Shown piece by piece: positions 2,913 to 6,107 of a stretch of 64,000 nt of DNA (positions are counted from its first letter, which is position 1; every line of letters begins with the position of its first letter). The stretch lies in sequence record LC778249.1. One strand, given 5' to 3'. A model generated the notes under the pieces. It was not told the origin of the DNA, made no database searches, and saw only the letters and a program-made list of their open reading frames with translations. The position numbers and the translations under genes are program-made.

Positions 2913-3004
2913 GGAGACGCTGCAATGACGGTGGTATTGCACCAGACTGTAAATCTGGCCCCACAGGGTGAACATTGTAGGTTCGAATCCTACCGGCTCC
3001 ACCA
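2913..3004 (+). tRNA. tRNA-Tyr(GTA)
   Basis: CCAGA-CTGTAAA-TCTGG, long variable arm, CCA. Confidence 0.9.
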
Positions 3005-3033
3005 AATTTAATAAGTCAATAACGAGGTATACA

Positions 3034-3120
3034 ATGATTCCGATAGTGTTCCTATGTGATAATGATCACAGTGGTTGTCACCCAAACGGATGTTATTATT
3101 GTCCACATTATTACTTGTAG
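3034..3120 (+). CDS. 28-aa Cys/His-rich micropeptide (not in ORF track)
   Basis: GAGGT RBS then MIPIVFLCDNDHSGCHPNGCYYCPHYYL*. Confidence 0.55.
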   Translation: MIPIVFLCDNDHSGCHPNGCYYCPHYYL

Positions 3121-3127
3121 TTTAAAC

Positions 3128-3202
3128 GGTGCATTAGTATAATGGCTATTATTCGTGACTGTCTATCACAGGATACGGGTTCGATTCCCGTATGTACCGC
3201 CA
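3128..3202 (+). tRNA. tRNA-Asp(GTC)
   Basis: GGTGCAT/ATGTACC, CTGTCTA loop, G73 + CCA. Confidence 0.92.
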
Positions 3203-3268
3203 GTTTCTGCCTAGCAGGAAAGAGAACTTACCCGACAAAGTTTAGTTCTTAGCTCTTTGATTATCGCT

Positions 3269-3416
3269 GGATTCACTACAGCAAAACCTAAAATACAAAA
3301 CAAACTCTACTATTAAATGGATAGCACTCCTTTACTTCGGTAGTTGGATGTGCGGCTGAGAGGGAACAGCATATAAAAGTAACGGCGGGTTAGTCACCGC
3401 TCCCATATGTGAATCC
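3269..3416 (+). ncRNA. Large motif RNA (helix + TACAGCAA)
   Basis: GGATTCAC/GTGAATCC terminal helix, TACAGCAA 3277-3284, several internal hairpins. Confidence 0.55.
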
Positions 3417-3486
3417 GAAGACTTGCGATAACCACTTGCAAATAGTGGTTATTCTAATGTATAATCACGATTGTATATTAGAATTT

Positions 3487-3562
3487 GGGGATATAGCTCA
3501 GTTGGGAGAGCACTAGCCTTGCAAGCTGGGGGTCGTGGGTTCGAGTCCCATTGTCTCCACCA
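3487..3562 (+). tRNA. tRNA-Ala(TGC)
   Basis: GGGGATA/TGTCTCC with G3:U70, CTTGCAA loop, CCA. Confidence 0.95.
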
Positions 3563-3572
3563 AATTTAAATC

Positions 3573-3648
3573 GCGTGATTAACTCAGTTGGTAGAGTGTC
3601 AGCCTTCCAAGCTGTTCGTCGCCCGTTCGAGTCGGGTATCACGCTCCA
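3573..3648 (+). tRNA. tRNA-Gly(TCC)
   Basis: GCGTGAT/ATCACGC, CTTCCAA loop, U73 + CCA. Confidence 0.93.
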
Positions 3649-3655
3649 AATTAAC

Positions 3656-3730
3656 GCGCAGGTAGCCAAGCGGTAAGGCAAGTGATTGCAAATCACTTTA
3701 TCGTCTGTTCGATCCAGATCCTGTGCTCCA
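3656..3730 (+). tRNA. tRNA-Cys(GCA)
   Basis: GCGCAGG/CCTGTGC, TTGCAAA loop, U73 + CCA. Confidence 0.93.
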
Positions 3731-3746
3731 CATTGAGAAATAATTT

Positions 3747-4172
3747 ATGAGCGCACCTAGTTATGCGCTGTTCATGAAGAACGGCGATTGTGTCGGGAAC
3801 TGCTTTATCAACTGCGGTTGGTGGCATGATGAACCAAGAACACTGAGACAGATTATCCGGTATACCGAAACCGATGAATGTCCTATCGACTATGATAGTG
3901 TAATCGCGTATGGTGTTACCTATAGCAATGACTTGGAATTCGAGCTTCTGAAAGCAGAAGAAACGGAAGCTAAGTTGAGAGAAATTGCTGAAAATAAGCG
4001 TAAGCAAAGTTGGGAAGATTTACATCAGAAGATGATCGAACGGACGAAACCGATTGATCGAATGCTTCCTGAATTGATCGCTGCTGAGATATGCGGAGTT
4101 CAGCCAATGACTGGTCATGTTCCTAACGTTTTTTCGTTGAAGGTAGTTTACGGCGATGATATTTCTTGCTAA
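3747..4172 (+). CDS. Protein with C-terminal T4 gp23 Gol-peptide-like segment
   Basis: DRMLPELIAAEICGVQPMTGHVPNVFSLKVVYG resembles T4 gp23 RRAIPNLIAFDICGVQPMNSPTGQVFALRAVYG. Confidence 0.75.
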   Translation: MSAPSYALFMKNGDCVGNCFINCGWWHDEPRTLRQIIRYTETDECPIDYDSVIAYGVTYSNDLEFELLKAEETEAKLREIAENKRKQSWEDLHQKMIERTKPIDRMLPELIAAEICGVQPMTGHVPNVFSLKVVYGDDISC

Positions 4173-4548
4173 GATACGTTATATGAAAAGCGAATACATG
4201 GGTTCATCTAAATCATTCGATACCATTAAACTGGTAGAAGCAGAAGATGCAGACGAGGCCGATAGCAAAGTTCGCGAATATTACAACGACAAAAGTTCAG
4301 ATTATGGCACATATTATTCCGTTCTGGACGTTTCGATAGAAGAACCGATTAGGTGATTTATGAGTAAAGAATCCGAATTGAGATTCACGCTGAAAGAACT
4401 GAAACGAATGGTTCAATTGGCGGAAGAGAATAACACAACACTGGTTGATGTCAAATATACCTCAGGGTGTATCGGCTCAATCGTCATGGCAAAACCGGTG
4501 TGTAAAGACGGCGAATTCGAATCTGTAACTGATGTCGATAGCTGGTAA
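4156..4548 (+). other. Two small hypothetical CDS (4156-4356, 4360-4548)
   Basis: Tandem, closely packed + strand ORFs. Confidence 0.65.
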
Positions 4549-4557
4549 AAAGATTAT

Positions 4558-4631
4558 AGGGGCGTAGCAAATCGGTTATGCGGCGGATTCCAAATCCGTT
4601 GAGGTGGGTTCGACTCCTACCGCCCCTGCCA
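4558..4631 (+). tRNA. tRNA-Trp(CCA)
   Basis: AGGGGCG/CGCCCCT, TTCCAAA loop, CCA. Confidence 0.93.
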
Positions 4632-4637
4632 AACAAC

Positions 4638-4713
4638 GCGCCGTTAGCTTAGTTGGTAGAGCATCGGACTTTTAATCCGAGGGTCGATGGTTCGAGTCCA
4701 TCACGGCGCACCA
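4638..4713 (+). tRNA. tRNA-Lys(TTT)
   Basis: GCGCCGT/ACGGCGC, CTTTTAA loop, CCA. Confidence 0.95.
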
Positions 4714-4737
4714 AACAATCGCTTTGAAAGGTGAAAT

Positions 4738-4842
4738 CGCTAATGCTTTTAAGTGCAATGGGATAGCTTCTCGAAAGTCGGGATATAGATTGCCCCGTCG
4801 GTATTGATTTCATGATAGGTTCGATTCCTATCCTTAGCGTCT
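4738..4842 (+). ncRNA. tRNA-like RNA with a T arm but no D or anticodon arm (T4 species 1/2 genre)
   Basis: GATAGG-TTCGATT-CCTATC followed by CTTAGCG, pairing with CGCTAA at the 5' end. Confidence 0.5.
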
Positions 4843-4848
4843 AATTAT

Positions 4849-4923
4849 CTCGGGTTAGGCAAGTGGTATGTCGCCTGGTTTGGGACCAGGTCGTCGAGTG
4901 TTCGATTCACTCACCCGAGACCA
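4849..4923 (+). tRNA. tRNA-Pro(TGG)
   Basis: CTCGGGT/ACCCGAG, CCTGG-TTTGGGA-CCAGG, CCA. Confidence 0.93.
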
Positions 4924-4929
4924 AATAGA

Positions 4930-5176
4930 GAATGCCAACTATGTCCTAGGAAACTTAGTTGGAAGTCCAGCTGAAGGTCCCTCTCTCGCGAATAGCGATG
5001 ATGCACCAGGAAGGGGCGAATGATTCACTTGTGGGTCATTTCAAAGAGTTCTGATAGAGTTCTTTGAATTGATTCATGCGTTGCATCGCATTGAATGAAG
5101 TGGGGTTACACAAAGTAGGATTAAGTTACCGAAACGATACGACGATGACCCACGTTAAACGTTAATATTCGTCCCA
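4930..5176 (+). ncRNA. Candidate large structured RNA
   Basis: Nested helices 5013-5021/5167-5175, 5031-5039/5145-5153, 5040-5047/5061-5068, 4935-4941/4956-4962; no ORF. Confidence 0.5.
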
Positions 5177-5182
5177 GTTTAT

Positions 5183-5258
5183 AGGGGTATCGCCAAGTTG
5201 GAAAGGCAACGGATTTTGATTCCGTCATTCGCTGGTTCGAGTCCAGCTACCCCCGCCA
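5183..5258 (+). tRNA. tRNA-Gln(TTG)
   Basis: ACGGA-TTTTGAT-TCCGT, T arm GCTGG-TTCGAGT-CCAGC, G73 + CCA. Confidence 0.92.
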
Positions 5259-5280
5259 ATTTCAACTAAGAGAATTTATC

Positions 5281-5445
5281 ATGATTGAATCTGTTATTGT
5301 GAAAATGCGTAAAGAAGCTGAGAGCTTGCGTAATGATACCCTCGTTAGTATGCGTGAAGGCGTTACTAATGACATCGTTGCTAAGTATCTTGACAAATAC
5401 GCCGACGAGTTGGAAAGAGCTGTTATGAATCCCATTGCTCTTTAA
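5281..5445 (+). CDS. 54-aa hypothetical protein (below ORF-track cutoff)
   Basis: MIESVIVKMRKEAESL... open frame between tRNAs. Confidence 0.55.
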   Translation: MIESVIVKMRKEAESLRNDTLVSMREGVTNDIVAKYLDKYADELERAVMNPIAL

Positions 5446-5532
5446 ATTATCAAACGGGATGCCGATGCGCGTGTGTAGCCAGATCGTAATGATCAAGATT
5501 CACGATGTCATAGAGGCATGACAAAGAATTAA

Positions 5533-5626
5533 GGAAGGTCAACCCGATAGCCGGCGACGGGAGCGGTCTTGAAAACCGTCGAGGGTTAACAGCCCCTTGT
5601 GAGTTCGACCCTCACACCTTCCGCCA
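5533..5626 (+). tRNA. tRNA-Ser(TGA)
   Basis: GGAAGGT/ACCTTCC, CTTGAAA loop, long variable arm, CCA. Confidence 0.92.
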
Positions 5627-5672
5627 ATTTAAACTAACCCATACGCGGTAGCGTAAAGGAGAACATCGGTAG

Positions 5673-6107
5673 ATGGAAATGTTAGACATGTGTCGCTGTT
5701 ATGTAGAGGTTGCTAGATACGCAATCAACATGCAACGATCAAAAAAGATTGATCACTGGTCATTTGATCCAGTTGAATATCTGAAACAGCACAGAACGAT
5801 TCACCTTGACTTTGGTCGCGGTACGATGAAGACTAGAGCCGCGTTTGATATCGCACAGGATCACAACGGTGTTCTTGTTACGATTAATCAAGCTCATGCT
5901 AGATGGATTCAGCGTGAAGTTTTCGGTAATACAAAAGGTAAAACCCGAATAACTTTTTCAAAGGGTGCTGTTGCGGAAATCCGAGAAAACAGTTATGATG
6001 TTGTTGTTATCGATGAACCAGCTTTACATAAACCGCATCTGCTAGAAGCGATTTATGATGCTTGTATTGACAAGAAGATTCAAAACATCATACTGATTGG
6101 ACGATGA
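5673..6107 (+). CDS. Hypothetical protein, degenerate P-loop NTPase-like
   Basis: GRGTMKT (imperfect Walker A) and VVVIDEP (Walker B-like). Confidence 0.45.
   Translation: MEMLDMCRCYVEVARYAINMQRSKKIDHWSFDPVEYLKQHRTIHLDFGRGTMKTRAAFDIAQDHNGVLVTINQAHARWIQREVFGNTKGKTRITFSKGAVAEIRENSYDVVVIDEPALHKPHLLEAIYDACIDKKIQNIILIGR

Follow-up and report, generated by a model that had tools for sequence, protein, structure and literature searches.

A family of small accessory proteins in T4-like phages carries a segment homologous to the Gol region of the capsid protein gp23

An open reading frame (ORF) inside a tRNA gene array of an Aeromonas phage encodes a 141-aa protein whose C-terminal module is, judged by sequence comparison, homologous to the Gol region of gp23, T4's major capsid protein. 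The ORF is a genuine accessory gene in T4-like phages, neither a capsid gene nor a relic. It belongs to a family that is widespread in phages and was previously undescribed. The family plan has three parts: a 60-aa N-terminal domain, a long helical stalk and, in over half of the members, a gp23-like flexible peptide.

The DNA analyzed here, designated as the window, is a stretch of 64,000 nucleotides from the record LC778249.1. Across positions 3000-6000 the identity is 100% with Aeromonas phage phiWae14 (LC778249) and 99% with phiAS5 (Straboviridae, Chrysonvirus). The ORF (Table 1) is phiAS5_ORF0311, and its orthologue is Aeh1p187. ARAGORN recognized 21 tRNA genes in the window, 20 of them between 594 and 7170. 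The ORF lies inside this array of 20, between tRNA-Cys (3656-3730) and tRNA-Trp, and starts after a gap of 16 nt from tRNA-Cys. The order tRNA-Ala/Gly/Cys upstream of the ORF is common to Aeh1, PX29, Ah1, and avDM12. The start of the downstream 66-aa ORF shares the last 17 nt of the 141-aa ORF, and overlaps of this type recur in Aeh1, PX29, avDM12, and AsFcp_4. The overlap suggests that the two ORFs may be translationally coupled, and the conserved "DD[IV]SC" tail of the 141-aa protein is explained by the downstream start overlapping there. The ORF of Ah1 (L004/L024) ends 10 codons earlier (…LAAKR followed by the stop) than that of AsFcp_4 (L009; …LAAKKVVYNDDVSC); the tail overlapping the next gene is lost and the module core is retained. 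Another ORF in the tRNA array (5673-6107, plus strand, 144 aa) matches phrog_2586 (function unknown) with the E-value 5e-27 and, faintly, the ATPase part of the large terminase (phrog_2, E 0.003).

Table 1. Positions of the ORF, the parts of its product, and the neighboring features in the window.
Feature	Coordinates	Strand	Residues	Remarks
Candidate sigma-70-type (early) promoter	3436..3465	+		TTGCAA-18-TATAAT, 10/12 matches; ahead of tRNA-Ala
tRNA-Ala(UGC), tRNA-Gly(UCC), tRNA-Cys(GCA)	3487..3730	+		directly upstream of the ORF
Whole ORF (P0001)	3747..4172	+	141 aa	ATG start, TAA stop
N-terminal domain	3747..3926	+	1-60	beta-hairpin, helix, beta-hairpin (predicted); AF2 pLDDT ~90
Stalk, predicted single helix	3933..4043	+	63-99	AF2 pLDDT ~91-94
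gp23-like module	4035..4163	+	97-139	core residues 103-138 (4053-4160)
Downstream ORF	4156..4356	+	66 aa	phrog_11654, PHROG function unknown
Second small downstream ORF	4360..4548	+	62 aa	phrog_24902, PHROG function unknown; followed by tRNA-Trp (4558-4631)

The first-pass annotation of this DNA had described the ORF and a Gol-like C-terminus. The string of residues that it quoted is exact and corresponds to residues 104-136 at 4056-4154; the end at 4154 was placed correctly, while the start, given as about 4051, is actually at 4056. Its alignment with T4 gp23 was reproduced by phmmer against PDB chains, with 18 of its 33 positions identical. In the phmmer search against all PDB chains, residues 103-138 of the ORF aligned with T4 gp23 residues 99-134 (5vf3, 6uzc) with the E-value 6e-5. 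The Pfam family Gp23 (PF07068) matched residues 104-137 at profile positions 13-46 of 376 (E 2.1e-6), and the score of 27.8 bits passed the gathering threshold of 24.4. The family profile matched T4 gp23 with the E-value 7e-13. hhalign between the family alignment (A2) and an alignment of nine gp23 sequences (A4) yielded a probability of 98% and the E-value 1.7e-13 over 49 columns, corresponding to residues 95-143 of phiAS5 gp23 and approximately to 87-135 of T4 gp23. With both the Pfam and the hhalign matches significant, the kinship read from the letters alone is borne out at the level of profiles, and by these comparisons the similarity is well beyond chance. The T4 gp23 segment of about 87-135 is taken by us to be the Gol region, in part on the basis of a review (PMC3014915).

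The similarity is confined to the module. The Pfam Gp23 match in any tested family member falls within profile positions 3-61, including members with stronger matches (P0041, E 1.8e-13; P0035, 6e-13), and the N-terminal domain and the stalk are not gp23-like. The description of the protein as a non-capsid protein keeping just the Gol-region segment is therefore supported. The possibility that the N-terminal domain and the stalk are a diverged gp23 N-terminus was rejected, since only the module aligns with hhalign. The module starts at around residue 97 in the small protein and at around residue 95 in phiAS5 gp23 (L018:1213-2814); this near-equal distance from the N-terminus may be a coincidence or a trace of an origin from a 5'-fragment of gene 23. 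A word-indexed search with the module alone revealed nothing beyond the near-identical avDM12 protein. The ESM Atlas returned only small Gp23-labelled clusters below the trust threshold, which are probably gene fragments.

Members of the family are annotated as capsid proteins in public databases. The name "major head protein" is given in RefSeq to phiAS5_ORF0311, Aeh1p187 ("similar to T4 gp23"), PX29 gp308, Ah1 gp328, Moon gp176, and Merlin gp284. It is given also to Cronobacter S13 gp266, though this protein consists of the N-terminal domain only, without the gp23-like part. The mislabelled ORFs, of 88-141 aa, are found in NC_014636, NC_005260, NC_023688, NC_055733, NC_027331, NC_028857, and NC_028773 (loci L001-L007 and L013). 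PHROG 12830, which the ORF matches over residues 1-130 with the E-value 2.4e-61 (profile positions 1-127 of 128), is likewise named "major head protein" and placed in the category "head and packaging". The label is wrong because only a piece of about 45 residues of gp23 is present in the ORF. A full member of PF07068 would be expected to match most of the 376 profile positions of the HK97-type domain in around 400-560 aa, whereas the ORF matches positions 13-46 in 141 aa. The misannotation arises because the Pfam gathering score is formally passed, though the match is fragment-sized. The small proteins share with the gp23/gp24 capsid family (PF07068, HK97 fold) about 45-50 residues with significant E-values, but they are without more than 85% of the domain (the A, P, and I domains and the spine helix), and therefore cannot form a capsid subunit. 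Complete gp23 (534 aa in phiAS5) and gp24 are encoded elsewhere in these phages. The gp23 similarity has been noticed by annotators before; a published discussion of it was not found in the literature searched.

A profile search of 1.84 billion representatives revealed 89 matches at E <= 1e-3, and the family is put at about 89 clusters at 50% identity. With tblastn, full-length relatives were found from about 25 phage records, which include Aeromonas phages of several genera, the Citrobacter phages Moon, Merlin, and Ci1, and Vibrio phage D479. The family is absent from T4 and most T4-like phages, and the search with the family profile gave no homologue of the N-terminal domain in T4. All members carry the signature M-S-[LA]-P-S-x-A-x-F ... 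F-[IV]-N-[CIV]-G-W ... Y-G. Members of at least 117 aa have a C-terminal module that is gp23-like or a degenerate version of it, and members of 105 aa or less are the N-terminal domain alone. About half of the family is without the module, and the N-terminal domain therefore has a function of its own. P0019 (AHP1_11 of Aeromonas phage Ahp1, 259 aa) and P0025 (292 aa) have 100-150 extra residues past the module, without a Pfam match there, which indicates that the module does not need a free C-terminus. The metagenomic protein P0024 (169 aa) contains two tandem gp23-like modules (…ILADHIIDVQPM… and …DIAKELTSVQPI…), and this arrangement suggests avidity for an abundant or oligomeric partner.

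The anatomy of the protein was analyzed with an AlphaFold2 model built with the family alignment. The N-terminal domain is the family-defining part, with the signature M-S-x-P-S ... F-x-N-C-G-W ... Y-G and the nearly invariant residues M1, S2, P4, N22, G24, W25, and Y55. It is predicted to consist of strands at 4-11 and 14-22, a helix at 29-41, and strands at 51-54 and 57-60. The domain is acidic, with 11 D/E against 4 K/R in residues 1-66. No significant fold relative of the domain was found in the PDB (the best VIA Z-score was 4.4, which is not significant), and Foldseek with either the whole model or the N-terminal domain alone revealed nothing at E <= 0.001. The matches in a viral structure library were family members and N-domain-only relatives. 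The predicted helix that follows is a stalk or spacer in the model; it is charged, its length and sequence vary across the family, and its fold matches are coiled coils alone. The module has a pLDDT of 42-57 with a short helix at 107-115, and it is predicted to be flexible or disordered on the stalk.

Within the module, the family logo reads I-R-[RK]-x-x-P-x-L-I-A-x-[DE]-I-x-[GS]-V-Q-P-M, followed by the weaker x4-G-x-[IV]-[FY]-x-L-[KR]. About 13 positions are conserved within 18 residues of the core (R, R, P, L, I, A, D/E, I, G/S, V, Q, P, M). The residues on the opposite face of the helix, which are kept in gp23 (N105, F109, and C112 in T4), are hydrophilic or variable in the family. Such a pattern would be expected if a peptide that binds through one face had been released from the constraints of the capsid fold. 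No covariation of the module with the gp23 segment of the same phage was seen, because gp23 is nearly invariant in the segment.

Both the N-terminal domain and the module are under purifying selection. The pairwise dN/dS against orthologues is 0.13-0.35 for the whole gene, 0.10-0.34 for the N-terminal domain, and 0.09-0.52 for the module, with synonymous sites diverged or saturated in these pairs. In comparison with the capsid gene of the same phage, a check proposed in the first-pass annotation, the module and the corresponding gp23 segment share only about 50% identity, and the module is therefore old and not the product of a recent duplication. On the tree of the N-terminal domain the presence of the module is clustered, with 14 state changes against 29.7 in shuffles (0/500 as low), and the module is seen in both of the groups separated by the deepest split. 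This distribution fits an old fusion with repeated losses, with the reservation that the tree is short and its resolution poor. The same data bear on the possibility that the ORF is a functionless relic, left when part of gene 23 was duplicated into the tRNA region, for instance through homing-endonuclease-associated recombination, and happened to be joined to a small ORF. Homing endonucleases are found in the tRNA regions of T4-like phages, with an HNH gene upstream of the family member in ZPAH1, and RefSeq treats the ORF as a fragment of a "major head protein". A relic is nevertheless very improbable and is effectively refuted by the dN/dS of the module at saturated or high dS, by the two-part architecture maintained in about 50 divergent clusters with conservation at the protein level and not at the DNA level, and by the divergence of the module from gp23.

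The gene is in or beside tRNA arrays in phiWae14, Aeh1, PX29, Ah1, avDM12, ZPAH1, Ahp1, Vibrio D479, Citrobacter Ci1, and Cronobacter S13, as well as in two metagenomic contigs (L030 and L052). It is away from tRNAs in Moon, Merlin, and three short contigs. The N-terminal domains of the tRNA-linked lineages are just 25-40% identical, and the linkage with tRNA genes therefore exceeds recent shared synteny. In T4-like phages, however, the tRNA regions are places where small ORFs accumulate in general. Other neighbors are accessory genes of early type (QueC, NUDIX, ribonucleotide reductase, methyltransferase, and DUF2828), and the gene is outside the head gene cluster. No neighbor gene conserved across the lineages was found, and thus there is no obvious partner or toxin-antitoxin pair. 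In the tRNA array of Aeromonas phage ZPAH1, the HNH nuclease gene (L011 640-999) immediately precedes the family member, and it is possibly a vehicle for moving such cassettes.

The candidate promoter ahead of tRNA-Ala would drive tRNA-Ala/Gly/Cys and the ORF as a single transcript. Sigma-70-type sites in the window are not enriched over shuffles. No T4 late-promoter box TATAAATA was found within 18 kb of the ORF, the sole one in the window being 18 kb away. These scans, which are weak evidence on timing for both late and sigma-70 promoters, are consistent with early expression of the ORF together with the tRNAs.

Gol covers 29 residues in the first quarter of gp23; within its 20-residue core, 13 residues matter most (PMC3014915). 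The free Gol peptide binds domains II/III of EF-Tu with a preference for the GDP form, and the binding creates the substrate of Lit; the free peptide is sufficient for Lit activation, and in the primary work EF-Tu binding was proposed for the gp23 of every T4-like phage (PMC3014915). Among the 30-residue windows in the alignment of nine gp23 sequences, the Gol region ranks third in conservation. The module is homologous to the T4 Gol peptide and conserves its core RR-x-x-P-x-LIA-x-D-I-x-G-VQPM, but here it belongs to a non-capsid protein, is C-terminal on a helical stalk with an unrelated domain, has F109 and C112 replaced, and is probably expressed early.

Our best reading, which is tentative and held at somewhat less than even confidence, is that the module acts like the free Gol peptide and tethers the N-terminal domain to EF-Tu early in infection. 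Outside the capsid fold the module presumably cannot fold as in gp23, and it would serve as a linear binding motif. The protein would be produced together with the phage tRNAs, ahead of gp23, and would dock on EF-Tu (GDP form, domains II/III) via the module, bringing the N-terminal domain along. The phage may benefit from a tuned or protected EF-Tu/aminoacyl-tRNA step; alternatively, the protein may occupy the EF-Tu surface used by motif- or EF-Tu-dependent defences. The first-pass annotation had offered three roles (a decoy, an EF-Tu modulator, and a head-assembly factor), which are ranked here on indirect evidence. The EF-Tu tether is ranked first because EF-Tu is the sole demonstrated partner of the free peptide and because the gene travels with tRNA genes; the placement in tRNA arrays and the peptide-on-stalk architecture favor engagement of EF-Tu. 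Against the tether, the gene of Moon-like phages is off the tRNAs, tRNA regions collect small ORFs, and half of the family is without the module. EF-Tu accounts for 6-10% of cell protein (preprint 10.64898/2026.01.04.697583), which makes stoichiometric effects implausible. In gp23 itself the segment also has a structural part in the HK97-type core (Fang 2022), so that its conservation there need not be owed to EF-Tu.

This structural role brings in a second explanation. In the unexpanded T4 head, residues 66-105 of gp23* are disordered and L106 is the first ordered residue, directed inward toward the scaffold; residues 132-160 are the flexible I-domain linker; after expansion the N-terminal region becomes the N-arm and N-fist, with Met98 touching the portal whiskers (Fang 2022, PMC9546572). 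The module therefore corresponds to the hinge and the first ordered element of the capsid core. It might accordingly engage a partner of the gp23 hinge, such as the scaffold core, the portal whiskers, a neighboring subunit, or gp31/GroEL, and the protein would in that case control how gp23 folds or assembles, or enter the prohead. Every known carrier has a gp23-type capsid protein, which agrees with such a role in head assembly. The association of gp23 with EF-Tu was itself reportedly proposed to serve head assembly by Bingham and colleagues in 2000. We consider a head-assembly protein unlikely, however, as the gene is outside the head cluster, without a late promoter, and in early-type accessory regions, and T4 and most T4-like phages build their heads without a family member. 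Moreover, gp23 residues 106-131 are integral to the capsid fold and are not a surface docking peptide.

A comparison with the T4 internal proteins (IPI-III and Alt) points in the same direction. They are also small accessory phage proteins using a short peptide related to head assembly, but they carry their targeting sequence at the N-terminus, where gp21 cuts it off at L/I-x-E. In the small-protein family the conserved N-terminus is MS[LA]PS, the module is C-terminal or internal, and a conserved cleavage site is absent. The N-terminus MSAPSYALF of the ORF is part of the predicted folded beta-hairpin and not a T4-type capsid-targeting peptide ending in a gp21 site, and a gp21-like site of the I-P-E type before the module is present in 11 of 44 members.

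A third explanation is counter-defence. The displayed motif could bind a sensor of the gp23 motif (Lit-type or other) or block the EF-Tu-Gol composite without activation, and thereby blunt later abortive infection. Lit and CapRel sense capsid proteins via short motifs, type IV Thoeris cleaves EF-Tu, and Avs7 incorporates EF-Tu-GDP (domains II-III) in a capsid-sensing complex (preprints 10.64898/2026.01.04.697583 and 10.1101/2024.10.24.620036). EF-Tu is a recurrent hub of defence in Lit, type IV Thoeris, and Avs7. A decoy or competitor would suit a small, acidic, early-looking accessory protein, whose patchy distribution and frequent loss and gain of the module are typical of an arms-race gene. 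The weak structural neighbors of the N-terminal domain include the anti-CRISPR protein AcrIF9, with a Z-score of 4.0 that is not significant. On the other side, selection on the module is purifying and not diversifying, and we know of no sensor of the Gol motif in Aeromonas. On balance a decoy is doubtful. An anti-Lit decoy is less likely: Lit is activated by free Gol, so that an early free copy should trigger suicide and not prevent it, and relatives of Lit are rare. The Lit family (Peptidase_U49, PF10463) was found in 2 of 401 sampled species genomes of Gammaproteobacteria, one of them being the E. coli centre itself, in a survey with one genome per species that undercounts prophage-borne genes.

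The architecture resembles viral short-linear-motif mimicry and tethered-peptide adaptors, in which a disordered conserved peptide that copies a motif is attached through a spacer to a folded domain. Known viruses copy motifs of the host, whereas here the phage copies the motif of its own capsid, and a precedent for this was not found in the literature searched. A broader form of the EF-Tu reading is possible, though less likely than not: a dedicated family of early proteins in T4-like phages, displaying the Gol motif of the phages' own capsid on a stalk, would pre-occupy or re-purpose EF-Tu in step with the phage tRNAs, either shielding the interface of EF-Tu and the capsid motif from immune sensors or recruiting EF-Tu to the function of the N-terminal domain. 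If this is true, the phages would be the first ones seen to mimic the "pattern" of their own capsid.

Dozens of wrong "major head protein" entries in RefSeq and PHROG will mislead capsid-based phage classification and surveys with the g23 marker. Gol and the e14 protease Lit are the textbook case of a defence reading a short capsid motif through EF-Tu, and EF-Tu and capsid proteins have been recurrent hubs of bacterial immunity in recent work. The motif-bearing non-capsid family provides a handle on the old question of why this stretch of gp23 binds EF-Tu, and a phage strategy not seen before, directed at translation or immunity, could come to light through it.
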